Assembly: GCF_000143415.4 (NCBI RefSeq) | Contig: NW_003314378.1 | Location: 311,280 to 375,279, forward strand | Direction: 5' to 3' | From: Selaginella moellendorffii | Lineage: Eukaryota > Plantae > Lycopodiophyta | DNA length: 64,000 bases | In this document: piece by piece, positions 42,599-64,000 of the stretch | How positions within the stretch are numbered: position 1 is the first letter of the stretch | Layout: each line of letters begins with the position of its first letter | Program-made: the position numbers and the translations under genes | Notes under the pieces: model-generated | What the model saw: only the letters and a program-made list of their open reading frames with translations | The model's database searches: none | What the model was told of the DNA's origin: nothing

Positions 42599-43814
42599 AT
42601 GGATCTTCCTTTTGCCCTTGCTTTTGTTCTTCTTCTGACCTNNNNNNNNNNNNNNNNNNNNNNNNNNNNNNNNNNNNNNNNNNNNNNNNNNNNNNNNNNN
42701 NNNNNNNNNNNNNNNNNNNNNNNNNNNNNNNNNNNNNNNNNCTTTTACTCGAGTATGAAGCTGGCACGCACAGCGAGCTTGATCTTGGAGTCACTTGGAG
42801 AGCCCCGGTGGATTGGTCTCCTGCTCGGGGTCGGTTCTACACAAGCCGGTACTTGGCTGGCAGCGGGAATGCAAGGGGATCCATCGTCATTTCTTTTCGG
42901 GCAAATGATGGTCCTTCTGGGGACTGTTACTCTCCAGGTATCGAGGCAGTCGAGTACGTCGACATTATGATCCTCCAGATGATACCGTGGTATGTTCGTT
43001 TGTATGGCCACACGCTACAGGTTTCGTTGGATGGCCGAAACGTGGAGTTTTGGTCCGTGGTTAGACTGATGAGATTCACACCAGCAGAAGATCGCAAAGC
43101 TCCTGCTGCTGTGGAGATTGCTCTGCGAGTTTCTATTGCAACCCAGGCCGTAACTCTGACGATCCAATATGACAAGGTTTGTGATATTGCTGGTTGTTTT
43201 GGAAGAGATCTTGATGTTTGCTGTTTCATTCATGCAGGGATTTCTTCACATCGACGAGCATCCTCCAGATGCAAACCGTGGATTTGATCTGCCTTCCGCA
43301 GTTATCACTTTCCCAAGGTGCCGTGTGTTCAAACAATTCCAAAGTGATGATGTCGGTCACTCGCACATTTTGGCTGTTGTTCAGGTAGTCGATTGTTTTG
43401 TTTTTCCAAGTCCGAGTTTTGTCTTTGCTCTCCTCTTACAGAGCCAGCGTCCAATGCAAATATATAGCGAAGTTTCATTGATGCAACTGGCCACACCGGA
43501 TTTCAGCATGCCGTACAACGTGATCACCCTGACGTGCACAGTTCTTGCGCTGTACTTTGGCTCGCTGTTAAACGCTCTGAGGCGAAGGATAGGCGAGGAA
43601 GAACGAGAAAGCAAAGGTACCTAGAGTTATCTCCCCATCCATTCCAAGCTCTCGTTCTTATGCCATTTGTTCTTGACAAGCAGAAGGGAAGAAGGCGGGG
43701 CTTCTGAGCCAAAAGCTCAAGTGGCTGAGAAACGAGAAGCACATGAGAGTGATCAAGGTGATACTGGTGGTGATAATTGGTGTGGCTGTAAATCACTACT
43801 TGAGCTCGTCATGA
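42599..43814 (+). CDS. GPI transamidase component PIG-T/GPI16; middle hidden by 100-N gap (42642-42741)
   Basis: Signal-peptide start MDLPFALAFVLLL. After the gap the exons are open: SRYLAGSGNARG, PWYVRLYGHTL, GFLHIDEHPPDANRGFDLPSAVI and TPDFSMPYNVITLTCTVLALYFGSLLN. Confidence 0.85.
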
Positions 43815-44819
43815 TGGCACTCTGGGCTCTCGGAGAAATCATTCTGTCCAGACTCCTCTGGAGGTATTTCGAGAGAACAAAAAAATGTGAAAACTGGCGC
43901 TTGCATTTTCCATACACCTGACAGAAAGAGAAAAGCGAGGAGCTTTGGGACAGCTTCTCTTGTAGCTTCCGGGCGATAAAAACTGCTCTTTGCTAGATCC
44001 ATGGAGGAAGATGTACAAGTTAAAAACTCTTTTCTTGGGTTGGATACTTATATCTGTATAGGGGTTTTCCTTAAGGAGTTTAGGATCAGGTGTCCGTTCT
44101 TGCCTTTGAAGGATCTGTGCTTGGCTGGTTTTATATCTTTTATGCATCTTGGCGAAAACGAAGCAGCAAAGTTGCTGGATTGCAAGCTAATGTTACACTT
44201 TCTTGTGTTTGATACTAAAGCTAACAATAAGGAGAAACTTTAAGCAAAAGAAGTATAAGTGGAGAACTTTTGTTCCACAGTAGTAGGGGCAACCATGGTG
44301 CTAATGAAAATCTTATGTTGCTCTTTTGCCTCTTGCAAGTGCTGAGAGGTGAGTATTGTTTTATTCTTAGTAGCTTCTGTTGTTCAAGTGCTGGTGTTTA
44401 AAGACTTATTAGAGTTCACTTTAGTTGTTTTAGTTCCTTCCATCTCTATACCACTTTAAAGTATTAAAATACAGTTTTTATTATTTGTTAGAAAAATGTT
44501 GTATTTTTTGTATGAATTAAGATAAGGGATAGCTTTTTATTTGTTATCTAATTATTAATTATTTTCTCAAAATTGTATAAAAAGACCTCATAATTCGTGG
44601 GAAAATAATAACCTAAATATTTTAATAATAATAGAGTTTCTAAATAATATTTTATATTTAATTTTAATTTGATAAAAAATATAATACAAGGATGACATGT
44701 ATAAGTCCAGTATCTAATGTTTATCTATACATTTCTTCAATAAACTCTTTTTCAATTAGAGTTATGCATAAAACATAAAAATAAAAAAAATCATAACCCA
44801 TATTATGAAACATTTGTAT

Positions 44820-46420
44820 TTCCCATGATAACATTTATGATATTTTTAGCATGTCTAGGTGGTTTTTCAACAGCATAGTGAAGAGTTACTATTAATCTTG
44901 ATAATAGTATAGCATAATATAAGTTTCCAAAGTTTAGTGAAATACAAATTCATAAAGTTTCACCAAAGAGTAAATTGTACAAACATCATTTTAATATTGA
45001 TGTTTCTACTTTTTTTCCAAATGTCATGCCATTGGAATATCATTGGAGCACCAAAATAAACTTTTATAAACTTTGAATTCAATATATTAAACTAATCAAT
45101 TTAGGATATAATTATTATACTTACAATTATCTAAAGAAAAAAGAAACTATACCTTTTATTTATTCTATAGTATACACAATAGAAAAAAATATTTTAACTT
45201 TTAATTTTTGAAATTCAAAATATATATAAATTTCTCTTTTAAAGTGAATATGGTAGCTACTCCTTGTTCTAAAATTTTAATTTCATTATAATCTATAATA
45301 AAATATTTTAAGTTTTAGTAAATATAAAAACTCTAGTTTAACAAATAAAAATTATATTTTTTATATAAAACATTAATCTCTTTGTAAAAAGGACATTTGT
45401 CAATTAAGCTACCCTTCTCAATATCATTTTTGTATAAGACAATTGCAATAACATCATTACAAGCAAGTAAATCAAACTAACTACCAAATTTCTAAATTGA
45501 AAAATATACAATAAACATGCCTTATTCATAATAGGTATTGATTTAGGCAAGTAGTAGATGCAACTTCTTGATTTAAATGAAAGTGCTTCCTCTAATTAAA
45601 TTAAGTTTACTCAATTTCTTAGTGCTTAAATTGTTATGTCACATTGAATGGTGAGCCATTAAATATATACTTACAAATTCCTAATTAAGTATATATATAT
45701 ATTGAGTTCTAGTATTCGTGAATTTGAAATTTTATGATGCTGATTTCTACATTGTACCATCAAAAGGTTTATTTATCCTATTTATATATCTAATATTTAA
45801 GGTATATATAAAAAAAATTTAATAAACTATTTCTTAATAGGAGATATGCATAATATAAAAATTAAAAACTAATTTTGAATGCTCATATTAATAAATGTTT
45901 GTATTGTTGTGATAACATTTATGACATTGTTAGTATATTTGAGTGGTTTTTCAACAGTAGAATGAAAAGTTATTACCAATATTTCTAATGTTATGACACA
46001 TTATATGTTTTCAGTGTTTTGCAAAACAAAATTTTATGAAATTTCACTAAAGAGTAAAGATTGATATTTTTACTGCTTTTTCTAAATGCCACACCATTGA
46101 AACTTCATTAGAGCACATAAATAAAATTTATAAACTCTAAATTTATTATATAAAACAAATAAATTTATGATATAATTGTTATGTTTACAATTTTCTAAAG
46201 CAAAAATAATTTATAAAATTTTAAAAAGATATATAAGTTTCTTTTGAAGTGAATATAATATTTAATCCTTGTTCTAACTTTTTAAATTAATTGTAATCTA
46301 ACATAAAAAATGAGTAAATATATAGAGTTTCTAGTTTAACAACTACAGCAAAGTCATTTGTCTTAGAAGATAATTGCAATAACATTGTTGTAGGCAACAA
46401 AGTCAAACTACTTGCCAAAT
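44820..46420. repeat. AT-rich degenerate direct repeat (~44820-45490 and ~45905-46420)
   Basis: Shared blocks gataacatttatga, gtggtttttcaacag, aaagtgaatat..tccttgttctaa, ctagtttaac and aattgcaataacat. Confidence 0.8.
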
Positions 46421-52157: not shown

Positions 52158-53707
52158 TATAAGTGACTAAGTTTTCCATTTTACTTTAGTCATTTAACCG
52201 CATCTCCGACCACTTGGAGGAGTCTCATTCACAACTTCCATAAGTCCCAGTTAGGACTTGGGGCTTGCTAGCTCCGAGAATGGCATCCATGCCACTCAAC
52301 CTTTGCACTTGGTCCAAGTGCTCCACGTGTCTGATCCCATGACTGACACCCCAAAGCACCACTGACATATCGGCCCGTTACGCTAAGGCCATGCCCATTC
52401 ACCTTGGTCACACTGGTGGTCTAACGCCACTTACATCATAGTCCTATCTCTCAAAGACTGGGCCATCCGTCTGTGAGTGATCATCCCAGATCTACTCCTT
52501 AACATCCTTAGGATGCCCGTAGACATGGGGAATAGCCTTCCCCGACAACTCTTTTCCAGTCCCCACCAAGTCCCTTTCTGTCCATGGCCGTGTTCGCTAA
52601 CACTGCCACTAGATCAAGGCTCACAGGCTCGACCTCTAAGTCCCACTATCCTTTGGGACTTCTTCATCATGTGACCATATCCTTGGTCACTGCACTAGAG
52701 GACTGCTCCTCTTCCCTTTCACCGTTTGGGACTTTGTGACAACATTCCAGAACACCGTGGCCTTATGCAAGCCTCATGGGTACTCTCCCTGCCTTTCGCC
52801 TTTAAGTGCTCTAGCCATGGGCTTAGAGTTAGGTTCCGTTGAGCCACGCCAGGTATCCAAGTAGGTAGTGCCACCCACACTTGGACTGGGAGCATTGGCC
52901 AGTCGATCTCCCGGGGGAACTAGAGCTGGCTCTTGAACACTTCACCAAGTTACCCACTTGTCGGTCTGTGTTCACTTTAGTCTTGGACTTCCCAGTGGGC
53001 AGCTCATCACCCAACACTGGGTATAGCCTTCCTGGGCCAAATTGGCCTTTCCTGGCCCAACTGGCTCCACTGCAGTCCTCCCCCTTACTATACTTTTGGA
53101 GCTCACCAAACCCCCTAGGGTCTGGGAGACAAACACTTTGGGCTTTCACCCTCTTAGACTCGAACTCGGACTCGGACTCGGACTCAGACTCGGACTCAGA
53201 CTCGGACTCAGACTCAGACTCAGACTCGGACTCAGACTCGGACTCGGGCTTGGGCTCGATCTCGGCCTCAGTCTCGGCCTCGGTCTCGGTCTTGGTCCCG
53301 ATCTCGGTCTCGGTCTCGGTCCCAGTCTCGGTCCTGGTCTCAGACTCCATCTCGAACTCCATCTCGGGTCCATCTTGGACTCCATCTCGGACTCCATCTC
53401 GGACTCTATCTCGGGTCCATCTCAGACTCCATCTCGGGTCCATCTCAGATCCCATCTCGGGTCCATCTCGGACTCTTCCACGTGTCATGTTTTGGTCCTC
53501 TTGTGTCTTCTTTTCTAGAGACTCACTCATGGCTCGCCTCGTGCTTGTTCCTCGAGCACTTCGTTGGGAATTCCACTCCCACTCTTGACCTTTTCAAGTC
53601 GAAGCTTTTAGTCTAAATGTGTTACGATCGTTTGGCTTTCACTTTGGCCACTACCACGTGGCACCCTTTCGGCTCCACTTTGGGGCCTATGGATTTCGTG
53701 TCTCACA
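52158..53707. mobile_element. Solo LTR A (1550 bp), TSD AATAC
   Basis: aatac|TA(TG)taag...gtctcaCA|aatac. Colinear with LTR B. Confidence 0.9.
53155..53476. repeat. Hexamer (GACTCR/GTCTCG) and 11-12-mer (GGACTCCATCTC/GGGTCCATCTC) minisatellite inside LTR A
   Basis: Seen directly in the sequence. Confidence 0.95.
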
Positions 53708-55837: not shown

Positions 55838-56963
55838 TGTCGCGAATGTGACTTTAGGTATCGAAAGTTACCTGTCGGCTAGTCCTTACGGACACTTTTA
55901 CCTTACTGCCACGATGGCAGGAGGTCGATATTGCTGGGCCCGTTATTAGTTTCCGCCTAAGCTAGTTGAGAAACTGGTCATCACATGTGCACTTAGACCG
56001 GAAGGGCACTAAGGAAGGAAATCCTACATTGCCATTTGTCAAGCAGACTTGACACGGTGATGAGAAACTCATGATGTTGGCTTGCACTTGCTAGTGTTGG
56101 GAACCCCCGCAATATTGAGATTGGTCCCTCAATATTGCTAAATGATAGCTTACCGTGTCTGCNNNNNNNNNNNNNNNNNNNNNNNNNNNNNNNNNNNNNN
56201 NNNNNNNNNNNNNNNNNNNNNNNNNNNNNNNNNNNNNNNNNNNNNNNNNNNNNNNNNNNNNNNNNNNNNNNNNNNNNNNNNNNNNNNNNNNNNNNNNNNN
56301 NNNNNNNNNNNNNNNNNNNNNNNNNNNNNNNNNNNNNNNNNNNNNNNNNNNNNNNNNNNNNNNNNNNNNNNNNNNNNNNNNNNNNNNNNNNNNNNNNNNN
56401 NNNNNNNNNNNNNNNNNNNNNNNNNNNGGGTTCCCAATGTATAGTAGGGATAGTGGGTAGGTCGGGCATGGCCGACCAACCTGAGGCATAGTCTAGCTCC
56501 CGCTTGCGTGCCTGTCCTTGTTCTGCGTCCGGCTTGGGTCTAAGCCCAAGTTCCATTCCATGCTAGTTGGTGGAATACCCATGTCCTCGCGTTAGGCCAC
56601 CGGTATGCCGAAATAGCGCCAGACTCCGTTTGGCTCTGTTTTGCGTGCTGGTCTTGGCATTGGGATGCTGGTTGCTCCAGGACTGTTCCAAGTCACTCCG
56701 GGCCCCTGTCCCTTCACTCCTTGGGCTGTATGCTCGGGAGTTGCTCCGTGGACCGGTTCCGTCACTCCTTGGCTCCATGCTTGGGAGTTTGGCACCATTC
56801 CTTCGTTCAGTGGCTCAAGGCCCTGAACCTCGGGTTCCTATGGACACGTGGCATGTGACACGTGGCATCTGTCACGTGGCACAAAGAGGGTTAGGTTCCG
56901 CTTTGTGGTGTTATCTTATGGTAAATCACCATAGGATAAAGGGTCAAAACCACATGCGCTACA
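55838..56963. mobile_element. Solo LTR C (different family; contains a 265-N gap), TSD CTTGT
   Basis: cttgt|TGTCGCG...GCGCTACA|cttgt with short imperfect terminal inverted repeats. Confidence 0.8.
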
Positions 56964-57726: not shown

Positions 57727-59966
57727 TGTAAGCGACTAAATTTTCAATTCTACTTTAGTCACTTAACTACACCTTCGACCACTTGGAGGAGTCTCACTCA
57801 CAACCTCTATAAGTCCTATTTTGAAATTACGGACTTGCTAGCCCCAAGAATGGCATCCAAGCCACTCAACCATTGCACTTGGTCCAAGTGCTCCACGTGT
57901 TTGATCCCATGACCGACACCCCAAAGTACCACCGACATATCAGCCTGTTACGCTAAGGCCATGCCCATTTACATTGGTTACACCAGTGGTCTAACACCAC
58001 CTACATCACAGTCCCGTCTCTCAAAGACTGAGCCATCCATCCATGAGTGATCATCCCAGATCCACTCCTTAGCATCCTTAGGATGCCCGCAGACAAGAGG
58101 AATAGCCTTCCTTGACAACTCTTTTCCAGTCCCCACCAAATCTCTTTTTGTCTATGGCCATGTTTGCCAATACTGCCACTGGATTAAGGCCCGCAAGCCC
58201 AACCACCAAGTCCCATTGTCCACTAGGACTTCCTCACGGTGTGACCGTATCCTTGGTCGCCACTCTAGAGGACTACTCCTCTTCCTTTCCACAGTCTACA
58301 ATTTTGGGACAATATTTCAGAACACCATGGCCCTATGTGACCTGGGTACTCTCCTCGCCTTCCACCTTTGGGTGCTCTAGCCATGGGCTTAGAGCGAGGT
58401 TCCGTTGAGCCATGCCAGGTATCCAAGTAGGTAGTGCCACCCACATTTGGACTGGGAGCATTGACCATTCGATCTCCCGGGGGAACTAGAGCCGGCTCTT
58501 GAACACTTCACCAAGCTACCCCACTTGTCAGTCCATATTGACTTTAGCCTTGGACTTCCCAGGTGGTCATCCCATCAACCAACAGATGGGTANNNNNNNN
58601 NNNNNNNNNNNNNNNNNNNNNNNNNNNNNNNNNNNNNNNNNNNNNNNNNNNNNNNNNNNNNNNNNNNNNNNNNNNNNNNNNNNNNNNNNNNNGATCCAAC
58701 CCCCACACTCTCCCTACCCCTGCAGCCCCCCCCCCCCACCCTCTGGGGGATGATTGCTTTGGGCTTTCACCCAATAGCCTATATTAGTATTCAGACTCAA
58801 ACTCGGACTCGAAATCGGACTCGGACTCGGAATCGGACTCAGACTCGGACTTGGACTCGGTCTCGGTCTCAGTCTCGGTCTCGGACTCGGACTTGGTCTT
58901 GGTCTCGGTCCCAATTCCATCTCAGACTCCATCTCAAGTCCATCTCAAGTCCATCTCAAACTCCATCTTGGACTCCATCTTGGGTCCATCTCGGACTCCA
59001 TCTCAGGTCCATCTCGGATCCATCTCGGACTCCATCTCGGACTCCATCTCAGACTCTATCTCGGGTCTCCATCTCGGACTCCATCTCGGGTCCATCTCAG
59101 ATCCATCTCGGACTCCATCTCGGACTCCATCTCAGGTCCATCTCGGACTCCATCTCGGGTCCATCTCAAGTCCATCTTAGACTCCATCTTGGACTCCATC
59201 TCAGACTCCATCTCGGGTCCATCTCGGACTCCATCTCAAGTCCATCTCTGATCCATCTCAGACTCCATCTTGGACTCCATCTCGGGTCCATCTCAGGTCC
59301 ATCTCGGACTCCATCTCGGGTCCATCTCGGATCCATCTCGGACTCCATCTCAGGTCTATCTCTGATCCATCTCAGACTCCATCTCGGACTCCATCTCGGG
59401 TCCATCTCAGGTCCATCTCGGACTCCATCTGGGACTCCATCTCGGGTCCATCTCGGATCCATCTCGGACTCCATCTCGGGTCCATCTCGGACTCCATCTT
59501 GGACTCCATCTCGGGTCCATCTCAAACTCCATCTCAAGTCCATCTCAAACTCCATCTCGGACTCCATCTTGGGTCTATCTCAAGTCCATCTCGGACTCCA
59601 TCTCAGGTCCATCTCTGGTCCATCTCAAACTCCATCTCGGACTCCATCTCGAGTCTATCTCAGGTCCATCTCAGACTCTATCTCGGACTCCATCTCAGGT
59701 CCATCTCGGGTCCATCTCGGACTCCATCTTGAACTCTATCTCGGGTCTATCTCGGGTCCTCTTGTGTCCCCTTTTTTAGAGACTCACTCATGGCTCGCTT
59801 CGTGCTTGTTCCTTGAGCCCTTCATTGGAGTTCCACTCCCCTTCTCGACTTTTCAAGTTAAAGCTTTTAGTCCAAACGAGTTATGCTCATTTAGCTTTCA
59901 CTTTGGCCACTACCACGTGGCACCCTTTCGGCTCCACTTTGGGGCCTAGGGATTTTATGTCTCACA
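57727..59966. mobile_element. Solo LTR B (same family as A; contains a 100-N gap), TSD GTAGA
   Basis: gtaga|TGtaag...gtctcaCA|gtaga. Confidence 0.92.
58790..59760. repeat. Expanded hexamer plus 11-12-mer minisatellite inside LTR B (~970 bp)
   Basis: Dozens of ggactccatctc/gggtccatctc units. Confidence 0.97.
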
Positions 59967-60044: not shown

Positions 60045-60636
60045 TCAGAGTGCACGGGAAAGTATGGCTCTGATAGCGTAGTCGGATGCATCAACTTGAA
60101 CTATAAATTCATGTTTCCAATTCGGTCGAGCGAGTATGGGTGCTCGAACTAAATGATTTTTCAGCGTCTGAAATGCTGTGTCACACTCAGAAGTCCACTT
60201 GAATGGATTTTGCTTCTTCAACAAGTCAGTTATCGGCCTGCTGATCCGAGCATAATCTCGGATGAATCGTCGGTGATATCCCATCTTTCCTAGAAATTTT
60301 TGGACACCTGAGACTTCTGTTGGCAGTTTCATATTGAGAATGATTTCTGTCTTTGCCTTGTCTATCAGTATTCCTTGTTTGCAGACTACATGTCTGAGTA
60401 GAACTCTTGATTTGACGAAAAAGGTGCATTTCTCTGGATTCAGAGCGATGTTGTTTTCCTTGCATTTGTTGAAGAAGTTTTGAAGGCATTCCAAGTGCCT
60501 TGCTTGATTTTTAAAGACGCTAAAGTCATCCATGAAGACTTGCATGAAGTTGGTCAGGTATTCCTAAAAAGTCTCAGTTATGATTCTATGGAAGGTGAAC
60601 GGGGCGTTTGTTAGGCCGAATGGCATGCATAAATAA
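60045..60636 (-). mobile_element. Ty3/Gypsy RT-RNase H fragment
   Basis: MPFGLTNAP.TF, FMDDF, LNPEKC.F, FLG..GYHRRFI, L..APIL..P and VDASDYAI.AILS. Confidence 0.92.
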
Positions 60637-62049: not shown

Positions 62050-62372
62050 CTAATGTTGCTTGAGTTGGTTTGTATACCTTGTGCTCACAGCTATATTATG
62101 AAGAAAATAGTGTATTCAAACTTATGAAGAAAATAGTGTATTCAAACTTATGTTCATAAATGCTATATGCTGGACTCTTTTTGCAAGGCATATGCTGGAG
62201 TGATTTATCCCGTAGACGTTCAACAACTCAAAAAAAATGACATGCTACCTTCAAAGACTCCACGACCTCCAGGACTACCCAAGAAAAAGCGGATTCGTTC
62301 GGAAGATGAAGGAGTGAGTTTTATTGTGGTCGTTGTGGGCAATGTGGTCATAGTCGTCGTACGTGCACTGTT
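62050..62372 (+). mobile_element. Mutator/MULE transposase C-terminal remnant
   Basis: IPCAH (end of SWIM), AY.GVIYP, RPPGLPKKKR and a frameshifted CGRCGQCGHSRRTC knuckle. A 26-bp tandem duplication lies at ~62096-62151. Confidence 0.75.
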
Positions 62373-62645
62373 TGATTATTATTATAATTATGTACGTCGG
62401 ACAAATACAATTATATATGAACAGATTAATAATGTAGGGAGCACGACCAAGAAAAATAATTTTAAATTTCCTAACATAATATAAATTACATCGATCGCAG
62501 ATAAAGCTTCCGACTATTGACAAACAATAGATTGATTGTCGAACGCGTTTCAGAAACTACCCGAACGGTGTACGGACTGCTGACCAAGGACCTCGCGGGG
62601 ACACAACGTGAGACTTAGTCTAAAGCTGAGAGCACTGTCAATGAA

Positions 62646-63795
62646 ATGGATGCTCATCTGGGCCTGGTGACCAATGCGATTTCTGCGGTGCAAGCGATTC
62701 TCAAGGCGAGGGAGGAAATACAGGCTGCGCCAATCAAAATTGTGGACTTAGTAGAGCAGGTGCAGAATGCGGGTAGGCTACTTTCGAGGGTTCAAGGGCT
62801 TCTAGAGCAGGTGTCTGATCCTCAGACACTAGAATCACTGCTTCCTCCTCTGCAGCAACTTGGGCAGGAGCTGAACATTGCCAAGATTAAAGTGGAAGAG
62901 TACAAGTTCAAGGCTACTGGATCGACATCTGTAGTATCTGGAATCAAGACGGTGCTCGGCTATGGTGTTGCAACGCGCAACCGCAAAGTCGAAGACATCT
63001 CCAAGCGCATCCAAAATGCCTTGGTGCAGCTAGACCAAGCGTTGGGTGCGGAGGTCTTTGGGAAGTTCTTTGTCACACCTGCTTCTGCTGCTGCTGCTGC
63101 TGGTGACTCTACTCCCGAGTTAATTTCACAGCTGGACAAACTCAGCATAGAGTCGCTAGACTCTGAAGAGTTCAGTGTATCAGTGGAGATTGGGGGGATT
63201 GAGGGGAGTGAGTTCCATCCGCCCGAACCTGGATTGGAGGTGAAGGTTCAAGGAGACGAGGAAAATCGAGTTGCACGAGATGGCGGATATGAGCTGCAGA
63301 GTTCTAGCAAGCTAAGGTTTGAAATCGCTGTAGAAGATGATGGGTTCTTTTACATCATCACGTATGATCCCGAAGAAGGTGCACCTCTGCTTTACTATCC
63401 GAAGGTCTCATCAGCCAACAACAGCCTTCGATGGTATGCTTTGAGACTGTGTGTCTTGTCTATGTAATTTGGGTGTTGTGCTGTGCAGCAAGTTCAATCG
63501 CGTCTTCCCAGACAGTAGCAGGCATAAGCATGATCCAAAAAGCTTTCGAGTTGAAAAGAGTGGCCTGAAACGTGTAGGACAGCAAGCCGTTTACTTCGTC
63601 CTCTCTCAAACCAAGTTGCACCAAGGTAAGATTGTTTATCTCGAAGCAAATTCAAACTATTGTTTAGTATGATGACATTTGGTTCCAGATACACCTTCTA
63701 GAAAGCTCGAAATTGAAGAGGTCCAACAAGAGCTACAAGACGACTCCCACCAGATTTATGTTCGGAAGTTTGACTTCGACATCCTTGGTTCGTGA
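62646..63795 (+). CDS. Uncharacterised 343-aa protein: N-terminal helical-bundle (HeLo-like/MLKL/RPW8-like) domain plus DUF4384-like beta domain; exons 62646-63433, 63489-63625, 63689-63795
   Basis: Two canonical GT-AG introns (55 and 63 nt) join three exons into one stop-free 1032-nt frame. Domain calls are by pattern resemblance only. Confidence 0.8.
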
Positions 63796-64000
63796 AGCCA
63801 TCTTCTCAAATTAGGCGACACAAAGTAGATTACATCCATATGGCTATGGAACAAAAGCAAGTAGAGCGTGAGATACAAAGCCGCATTAGTACAGGTATGA
63901 CGCTGTTCTCAACCGATGTCCAAGCCTCAGCACGCGAGCTTCAGTTGGGCATTAGTTTGGCAGATGAGAAGCTTGACCAAGGCAGCCACATGTGGAGCAC

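Follow-up and report, generated by a model that had tools for sequence, protein, structure and literature searches.

Positions 62646-63795 of the window (the whole 64,000-nucleotide stretch of Selaginella moellendorffii DNA analysed here, taken from contig NW_003314378.1) hold an expressed, correctly spliced nuclear gene whose 343-residue product joins an N-terminal helical bundle of the HeLo-like/MLKL kind to a C-terminal beta-sandwich resembling DUF4384, both assignments being supported below formal thresholds. Judged from its sequences, the gene belongs to a family that is old in land plants and has a conserved intron. At five of seven loci of relatives, in liverwort, moss and lycophyte, a gene encoding a TPR-CHAT protease lies within 10 kb of the family gene. 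By analogy with protease-gated modules of bacteria and fungi we propose, giving the proposal about an even chance, that the protein is a HeLo-like executioner that would be released by a neighbouring protease.

Gene model, expression and family

The first-pass annotation of this DNA, made from the letters alone, had described a three-exon open reading frame (ORF) of 343 residues. The elements of the gene, with the evidence for each, are as follows.

62544-62645, plus strand: 5′ untranslated region (starts of the RNA contigs)
62646, plus strand: ATG start codon (sequence reading)
62646-63433, plus strand: exon 1, codons 1-262 plus 2 nucleotides (sequence reading and RNA contigs)
63434-63488, plus strand: intron 1, 55 nucleotides, GT..AG (RNA contigs and tblastn on relatives)
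63489-63625, plus strand: exon 2 (RNA contigs and tblastn on relatives)
63626-63688, plus strand: intron 2, 63 nucleotides, GT..AG (RNA contigs)
63689-63795, plus strand: exon 3, with the TGA stop at 63793-63795 (RNA contigs and relatives)

The exons sum to 1032 nucleotides, which corresponds to 343 codons plus the stop, and the frame is intact. Expression was checked by comparing positions 62200-64000 with Logan contigs from four runs (X1, X2, X6 and X8) belonging to four studies. Each run yielded one contig (4.3-4.7 kb) with 0 mismatches, from which both predicted introns had been exactly removed (4/4 runs). The 5′ ends of the contigs fall at 62544, 62550, 62561 and 62573, and the contigs extend ~3.3 kb beyond position 64000, the end of the window. 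Because intron-less contigs must come from RNA, they establish both the expression of the gene and its splice model, and the three-exon reading of the first-pass annotation is confirmed together with both of its introns. The idea that the frame is non-functional, either a chance ORF or a pseudogene derived from a transposable element, retains next to no weight: debris of transposable elements adjoins the gene and the public protein sets searched hold no entry for it, but the spliced RNA in four studies, the conservation of all three exons and the intact frame speak against it.

An exhaustive HMMER search of 1.84 billion representatives at a threshold of E<1e-3 returned 15 relatives, with no seed-plant, fungal or bacterial protein among them. 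The closest match to an exon 1 query is P0001, a full-length S. moellendorffii paralogue (40% identity, E 3e-37). The named members come from two lycophytes (S. moellendorffii, with several paralogues, and Diphasiastrum complanatum), two mosses (Ceratodon purpureus, with two paralogues, and Sphagnum compactum) and the liverwort Riccia fluitans and are all annotated as ‘uncharacterized’ or ‘hypothetical’, while the remaining ones are unnamed Logan, ENA or JGI sequences. In the family alignment (A1) conservation runs over the full length. Exon 2 is 45-47% identical to Selaginella paralogues (E 1e-9), and exon 3 is 42% identical to residues 305-334 of P0001 (E 3e-6) and also matches the C-terminus of P0002.

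The position of intron 1 is common to the moss and lycophyte relatives and, as judged by tblastn, the exon 2 match lies a short-intron distance downstream of the exon 1 match at every fetched locus. With relatives across liverworts, mosses and lycophytes and a conserved intron, the gene is not the orphan for which it had at first been taken. The accompanying remark that this architecture was not recognised from angiosperms agrees with the taxonomic range of the HMMER matches. Many database entries of the family (P0003, P0004, P0005, P0009, P0010 and P0013) are ORFs from genomic contigs that end exactly at the intron-1 position; such entries are truncated artefacts that hide the DUF4384-like half. 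A word-index protein search returned nothing for exon 1 and only two proteins for the family profile, an exact look-up of the unspliced 273-residue ORF found nothing on record, as was also the case for P0012, and the family profile run against PDB sequences gave only coiled-coil noise and no MLKL.

The helical bundle and the DUF4384-like sandwich

Within the coding sequence, models and alignment delimit five segments, for which low confidence is expressed by the predicted local distance difference test (pLDDT).

62646-63074, plus strand: N-terminal helical bundle, residues 1-143 (AlphaFold model, Foldseek, VIA, ESM features and Pfam on relatives)
63075-63116, plus strand: variable Ala-rich linker, residues 144-157 (pLDDT <50 at residues 144-153; alignment A1 columns ~250-330)
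63117-63242, plus strand: conserved helix plus beta-strand leading into the C-terminal module, residues 158-199 (alignment and models)
63243-63287, plus strand: disordered loop, residues 200-214 (pLDDT <50 at residues 200-212; invariant columns)
63288-63792, plus strand: DUF4384-like beta-sandwich, residues 215-343, split by both introns (Pfam on relatives, model, shape and features)

An AlphaFold model of the gene's own exon 1 (mean pLDDT 74) places helices at residues 2-24, 30-55, 59-91, 94-103 and 108-143 and disorder in the stretch after them. Helix 1 is hydrophobic: the Kyte-Doolittle mean over its residues 5-19, 1.69, is exceeded nowhere else in the protein. The N-terminal helices and the low-complexity linker that had been read from the letters are visible in the AlphaFold models, as is a beta-rich C-terminus.

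In Pfam scans of the relatives, PF17111 (PigL_N, formerly named Helo_like_N) gave P0010 and P0015 scores of 27.0 and 26.1 bits (E 3e-6 and 6e-6; cut-off 27.2), and PF22215 (MLKL_N) scored 23.4 bits against a cut-off of 27 (E 5e-5; P0008). When the exon 1 model was compared with PDB by Foldseek, the highest template-modelling (TM) score in the list was that of the MLKL N-terminal domain 2msv (0.61), with 6zvo at 0.52 and chains of the NRC resistosome also present, none with a significant E-value. Among the VIA structural matches, MLKL and CC-R proteins, including AtMLKL3 and the NRG1 CC-R, account for four of the top 11; alpha-catenin, FAT and THATCH domains tie structurally with MLKL, and the bundle matches are in this sense not specific. 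Finally, the ESM language-model features of the gene's own residues 1-145 match fungal PigL_N/SesA clusters at 0.93. Because these three independent kinds of evidence (Pfam on relatives, structure and language-model features) agree, none of them formally conclusive, assignment of the N-terminal domain to the HeLo-like/SesA/MLKL_N/CC-R group of membrane-targeting death domains is supported, below formal thresholds. The HeLo-like or MLKL-type N-terminus anticipated by the first-pass annotation is therefore supported, with every Pfam score below its curated cut-off.

For the C-terminal domain, the fold, shape and feature tests were run on paralogue P0001 as a stand-in for the gene. The AlphaFold model of P0001 (mean pLDDT 76.9, rising to 85-93 in the C-terminal domain) has a beta-sandwich that begins near residue 173 and takes up the rest of the chain. 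DUF4384 (PF14326) is the sole Pfam family that matches the C-terminal part of the relatives: five members align with it (E 5e-4 to 0.1) at 13.2-20.6 bits against a cut-off of 27 bits, always over profile positions 5-66 of 81. The gathering score was not reached in any relative, and the gene's own exon pieces, scanned separately, gave no match to it. A shape search of the Atlas with P0001 retrieved bacterial DUF4384 and caspase plus DUF4384 clusters (TM 0.38-0.49). In the language-model features of P0001 residues 198-336, 30 of 30 matches were DUF4384 clusters, and the best of them (0.93) shared 199 of the 256 features. These results support, below formal thresholds, the view that the sandwich is a DUF4384 domain, and the DUF4384-like reading of the first-pass annotation was right in kind, though the Pfam scores stay short of formal membership.

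Foldseek on the P0001 sandwich gave only weak Ig-like matches, to RhoGDI and PDE6D (E ~3e-3, TM ~0.5); kinship with these proteins was set aside, and we read the matches as pointing to nothing more specific than an Ig-like sandwich. In the Atlas shape search, Bacteroidota proteins of ~290 residues annotated as DUF4384 (rows 1, 3, 5 and 6 of the list) align over 174-184 residues of the 336-residue P0001 model, which is more than the sandwich alone, so that some bacteria may carry a similar layout of a helical region plus DUF4384.

The two modules are joined by segments of different character. At residues 144-157, the relatives hold insertions of differing length. In contrast to this variable linker, the disordered loop just ahead of the sandwich core holds R208 (nucleotides 63267-63269) in the motif R-x-[A/G]-x-x-G-G. 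R208 and P252, the latter within the sandwich motif L-[FY]-[FY]-P, are the only two residues that are invariant across the family in alignment A1. The R208 loop is a candidate recognition or cleavage site for a protease.

The affinities of the two modules also bear on the origin of the gene, which the first reading had thought possibly horizontal. A lineage-specific orphan gained recently from bacteria or fungi, with introns added later, is improbable in our judgement. The DUF4384 clusters recovered by shape and features are almost all bacterial, the look-alikes of the N-terminal domain are fungal and TPR-CHAT is mainly a prokaryotic architecture, all of which would suit such a transfer, but mosses, a liverwort and another lycophyte have relatives built from the same two modules, with intron 1 at the same place, and the HMMER sequence matches include no bacterial or fungal protein. 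Since intron 1 is common to mosses and lycophytes, a transfer, if there was one, would have the age of the land plants themselves, and such an ancient event, in their common ancestor, is possible.

Linkage to TPR-CHAT proteases and a proposed switch

The first-pass annotation had pictured a minimal, stand-alone module combining executioner and sensor. The genomic surroundings of the relatives do not bear this out, the family being paired with TPR-CHAT proteases at five of the seven loci listed here.

L001, S. moellendorffii GL377670.1: two tandem pairs, each a family gene and then a convergent TPR-CHAT gene (~1230 residues) 45-130 nucleotides away
L003, Ceratodon: CHAT homologue of 1561 residues, divergent, 1.2 kb upstream
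L005/L006, Logan contig: double-CHAT gene of 2114 residues, divergent as at L003
L007, moss-like metagenome contig: CHAT gene of 1504 residues, divergent as at L003
L009, Riccia: CHAT gene 8.5 kb upstream
L002, Diphasiastrum: no CHAT gene within 10 kb
L004, Sphagnum: no CHAT gene within 10 kb

The Selaginella CHAT partners have intact catalytic His and Cys motifs, and so does the L005 gene in the first of its two CHAT domains. Because CHAT genes are rare, linkage of this kind would be very unlikely for unrelated eukaryotic genes, and we regard its occurrence at five of the seven loci as strong evidence of a functional tie between the family and TPR-CHAT proteases. It could be argued instead that the gene acts independently of the protease, the adjacency stemming from a compact genome or shared regulation and control being exerted in another way, for instance by a ligand on the DUF4384 sandwich. 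In favour of this, the orientation and spacing of the pairs vary by lineage (convergent, divergent or 8.5 kb apart), two of the seven loci have no CHAT gene within 10 kb and the sandwich is weakly similar to the lipid-binding folds of RhoGDI and PDE6D. Against this stand the breadth of the linkage, from liverwort to moss to lycophyte, and the recurrent association of bacterial DUF4384 with caspase-fold proteases, which together make independence from the protease unlikely.

Two further observations concern the proteases themselves. In the double-CHAT gene (L005:1990-8334, Logan SRR33208216), the second CHAT domain has lost its His and Cys motifs and may be a pseudo-protease domain. A third TPR-CHAT gene of S. 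moellendorffii (L008, GL377569.1; 902 residues as annotated) shares 86% identity with the paired ones; no family gene lies within 10 kb of it, and it may be a solo or partial copy. This locus was also considered as a continuation of the window and rejected, since it is a different place.

In the mechanism that we propose, the DUF4384 module would keep the bundle inactive and/or dock the protein onto a neighbouring TPR-CHAT protease. Once activated, the protease would cut at one of two places, the variable linker or the R208 loop. The freed helical bundle would then oligomerise on a membrane and permeabilise it, leading to cell death or to an immune or stress response.

The proposal rests on analogy with known systems. 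HeLo and HELL domains are MLKL-related membrane-targeting executioners (PMC12881547; PMC8851545; bioRxiv 10.1101/2021.06.07.447441). Like MLKL, HeLo, HELL (PF17111), SesA and the RPW8-type CC-R domains, the present protein begins with a four-to-five-helix bundle of ~140 residues with a hydrophobic first helix. Unlike MLKL, HET-S, HELLP and the CC-R NLRs, it is devoid of a pseudokinase, an NB-ARC domain and an amyloid motif; instead, the bundle is fused to the DUF4384-like sandwich and is paired with a protease gene in relatives. The Arabidopsis MLKL1-3 type, in which a four-helix bundle is followed by a brace and a pseudokinase, does not describe it either. Neither NB-ARC nor a kinase appears in the Pfam scans or the models, just as the first reading had held. 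With bacterial caspase-, kinase- and PEGA-DUF4384 proteins the similarity is confined to the sandwich, by shape, by features and weakly by Pfam, whereas the protein described here is eukaryotic, encoded by an intron-bearing gene and fused to a death-domain-like bundle.

The closest parallels in layout come from protease-gated pairs. In type III-E CRISPR (Craspase), the TPR-CHAT protease Csx29 cleaves Csx30 in a flexible linker, and one group of Csx30 proteins has a DUF4384 C-terminal domain (bioRxiv 10.1101/2022.08.17.504292). Csx30 and the plant family share the TPR-CHAT neighbour, in the case of the plants at the relatives' loci, and the order of N-terminal domain, flexible linker and C-terminal domain. 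Csx30 differs in being prokaryotic and RNA-guided, and its N-terminal domain, which has Csx31/RpoE as its binding partner, is not reported as HeLo-like. Fungal gasdermins are activated by adjacent TPR-CHAT proteases encoded in two-gene clusters (PMC12881547; PMC8851545). CHAT-activated gasdermins of bacteria and fungi parallel the proposed switch as a two-gene module of a TPR-CHAT-type protease and a membrane-permeabilising executioner freed by cleavage, but their fold is entirely different, and neither Pfam nor Foldseek nor VIA returned a gasdermin. A switch of the kind proposed would be akin in logic, and perhaps in descent, to the Csx29-Csx30 and CHAT-gasdermin modules.

The main rival to a protease-released executioner is a non-lethal role: the protein could be a substrate or partner of the TPR-CHAT protease without being a killer, either a Csx30-like substrate whose helical fragment binds or frees another factor, in signalling or gene regulation, or an adaptor or inhibitor of the protease, with the bundle serving as a protein-interaction module. 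The conserved CHAT linkage also fits this role, those Csx30 proteins whose C-terminal domain is DUF4384 have been described as regulators and not as pore-formers (bioRxiv 10.1101/2022.08.17.504292), and the structural matches of the bundle are as unspecific as noted above. An executioner is favoured by the Pfam and language-model signals, which are specific to the death-domain families PigL_N, SesA and MLKL_N, by the hydrophobic first helix and by the share of MLKL and CC-R proteins among the top structural matches. On this balance we consider the non-lethal role a serious minority possibility, holding perhaps one part in four of the weight.

Several points count against the protease-released executioner itself. 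Known activation of HeLo and HELL domains proceeds by amyloid templating and that of MLKL by phosphorylation, and neither is proteolytic. No Pfam model reaches its curated cut-off, the gene's own three exon translations gave no relevant match in the Pfam scan, and the C-terminal tests concern the paralogue P0001 in place of the gene. At the Diphasiastrum and Sphagnum loci no CHAT gene lies within 10 kb of the family gene. The mechanism is inferred, and cleavage of the protein, its toxicity and its binding to membranes are predictions. Moreover, the nearest analogue in layout, Csx30, is thought to act on transcription and not as a pore-former (bioRxiv 10.1101/2022.08.17.504292).

Should the executioner reading prove true, it would have consequences beyond this locus. 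The proposed pair would join a necroptosis-type executioner with a protease trigger known from gasdermins and Csx29-Csx30. Current understanding of regulated cell death in plants centres on NLR resistosomes, metacaspases and plant MLKLs. The literature searched contained no paper on this plant family, nor on a plant pairing of CHAT with HeLo/MLKL; what is new is a known type of executioner in a new fusion, a protease partner that is new for that type and a lineage unstudied for both. More tentatively, and with clearly less than an even chance, we suggest that early land plants own, and seed plants have lost, a cell-death or immune switch based on a HeLo/MLKL executioner that is cut by TPR-CHAT and carries DUF4384 as a docking or autoinhibitory domain, so that a pore-former of the necroptosis type would meet a proteolytic trigger of the pyroptosis type, and that the pair in the present copy may share one transcript. 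If the pair works in the way proposed, the protease-gated executioner modules of bacteria and fungi would extend to the plant lineage, DUF4384 would for the first time be placed in a functional setting in a eukaryote, and moss and liverwort models would offer a simple two-gene system for following how such modules were inherited or lost in land-plant evolution.

Downstream reading frame and surrounding repeats

The RNA contigs of the gene carry a second ORF beyond the stop codon.

63840-64000, plus strand: start of the second ORF (ORF2), with an ATG at 63840, 44 nucleotides past the stop, open to the end of the window

The start of ORF2 sits on the same spliced contigs as the gene, in all four studies, and the TGA at 63793-63795 is retained in the RNA. 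Given the 44-nucleotide spacer and the unbroken contigs, the arrangement is either a single message with two ORFs or a pair of overlapping transcription units, between which the contigs alone cannot distinguish. The first 53 residues of ORF2 have no Pfam match and no likeness to the N-termini of the CHAT proteins from the compared loci. That 63796-64000 might hold the tail of a convergent CHAT gene, in the manner of L001, was considered and rejected, all three minus-strand frames being closed. The plus-strand ORF at 63840 together with the closed minus-strand frames therefore means that the arrangement of this copy differs from that at L001.

The first-pass annotation had placed the gene at the edge of a nest of transposable elements, and such a setting is plausible. 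Upstream of the gene lie repeat-filled ORFs and N gaps. Closest to it, a short tandem duplication of a ~27-nucleotide unit (62096-62150) lies directly 5′ of the gene, and a small ORF with a basic PKKKR motif (62167-62484) resembles a fragment of a transposable element. An ORF resembling a gypsy-type reverse transcriptase is found nearby at 60045-60545 on the minus strand. Further away, 52829-53588 and 58525-59949 are long, repeat-filled and open in several frames on both strands, with pseudo-ORFs that are Ser/Asp-rich and Gly/Leu/His-rich. Assembly gaps (runs of N) occupy 42642-42741, 56163-56427 and 58593-58692, and an AT-rich block with a GC content of 0.25 spans 44001-46000.
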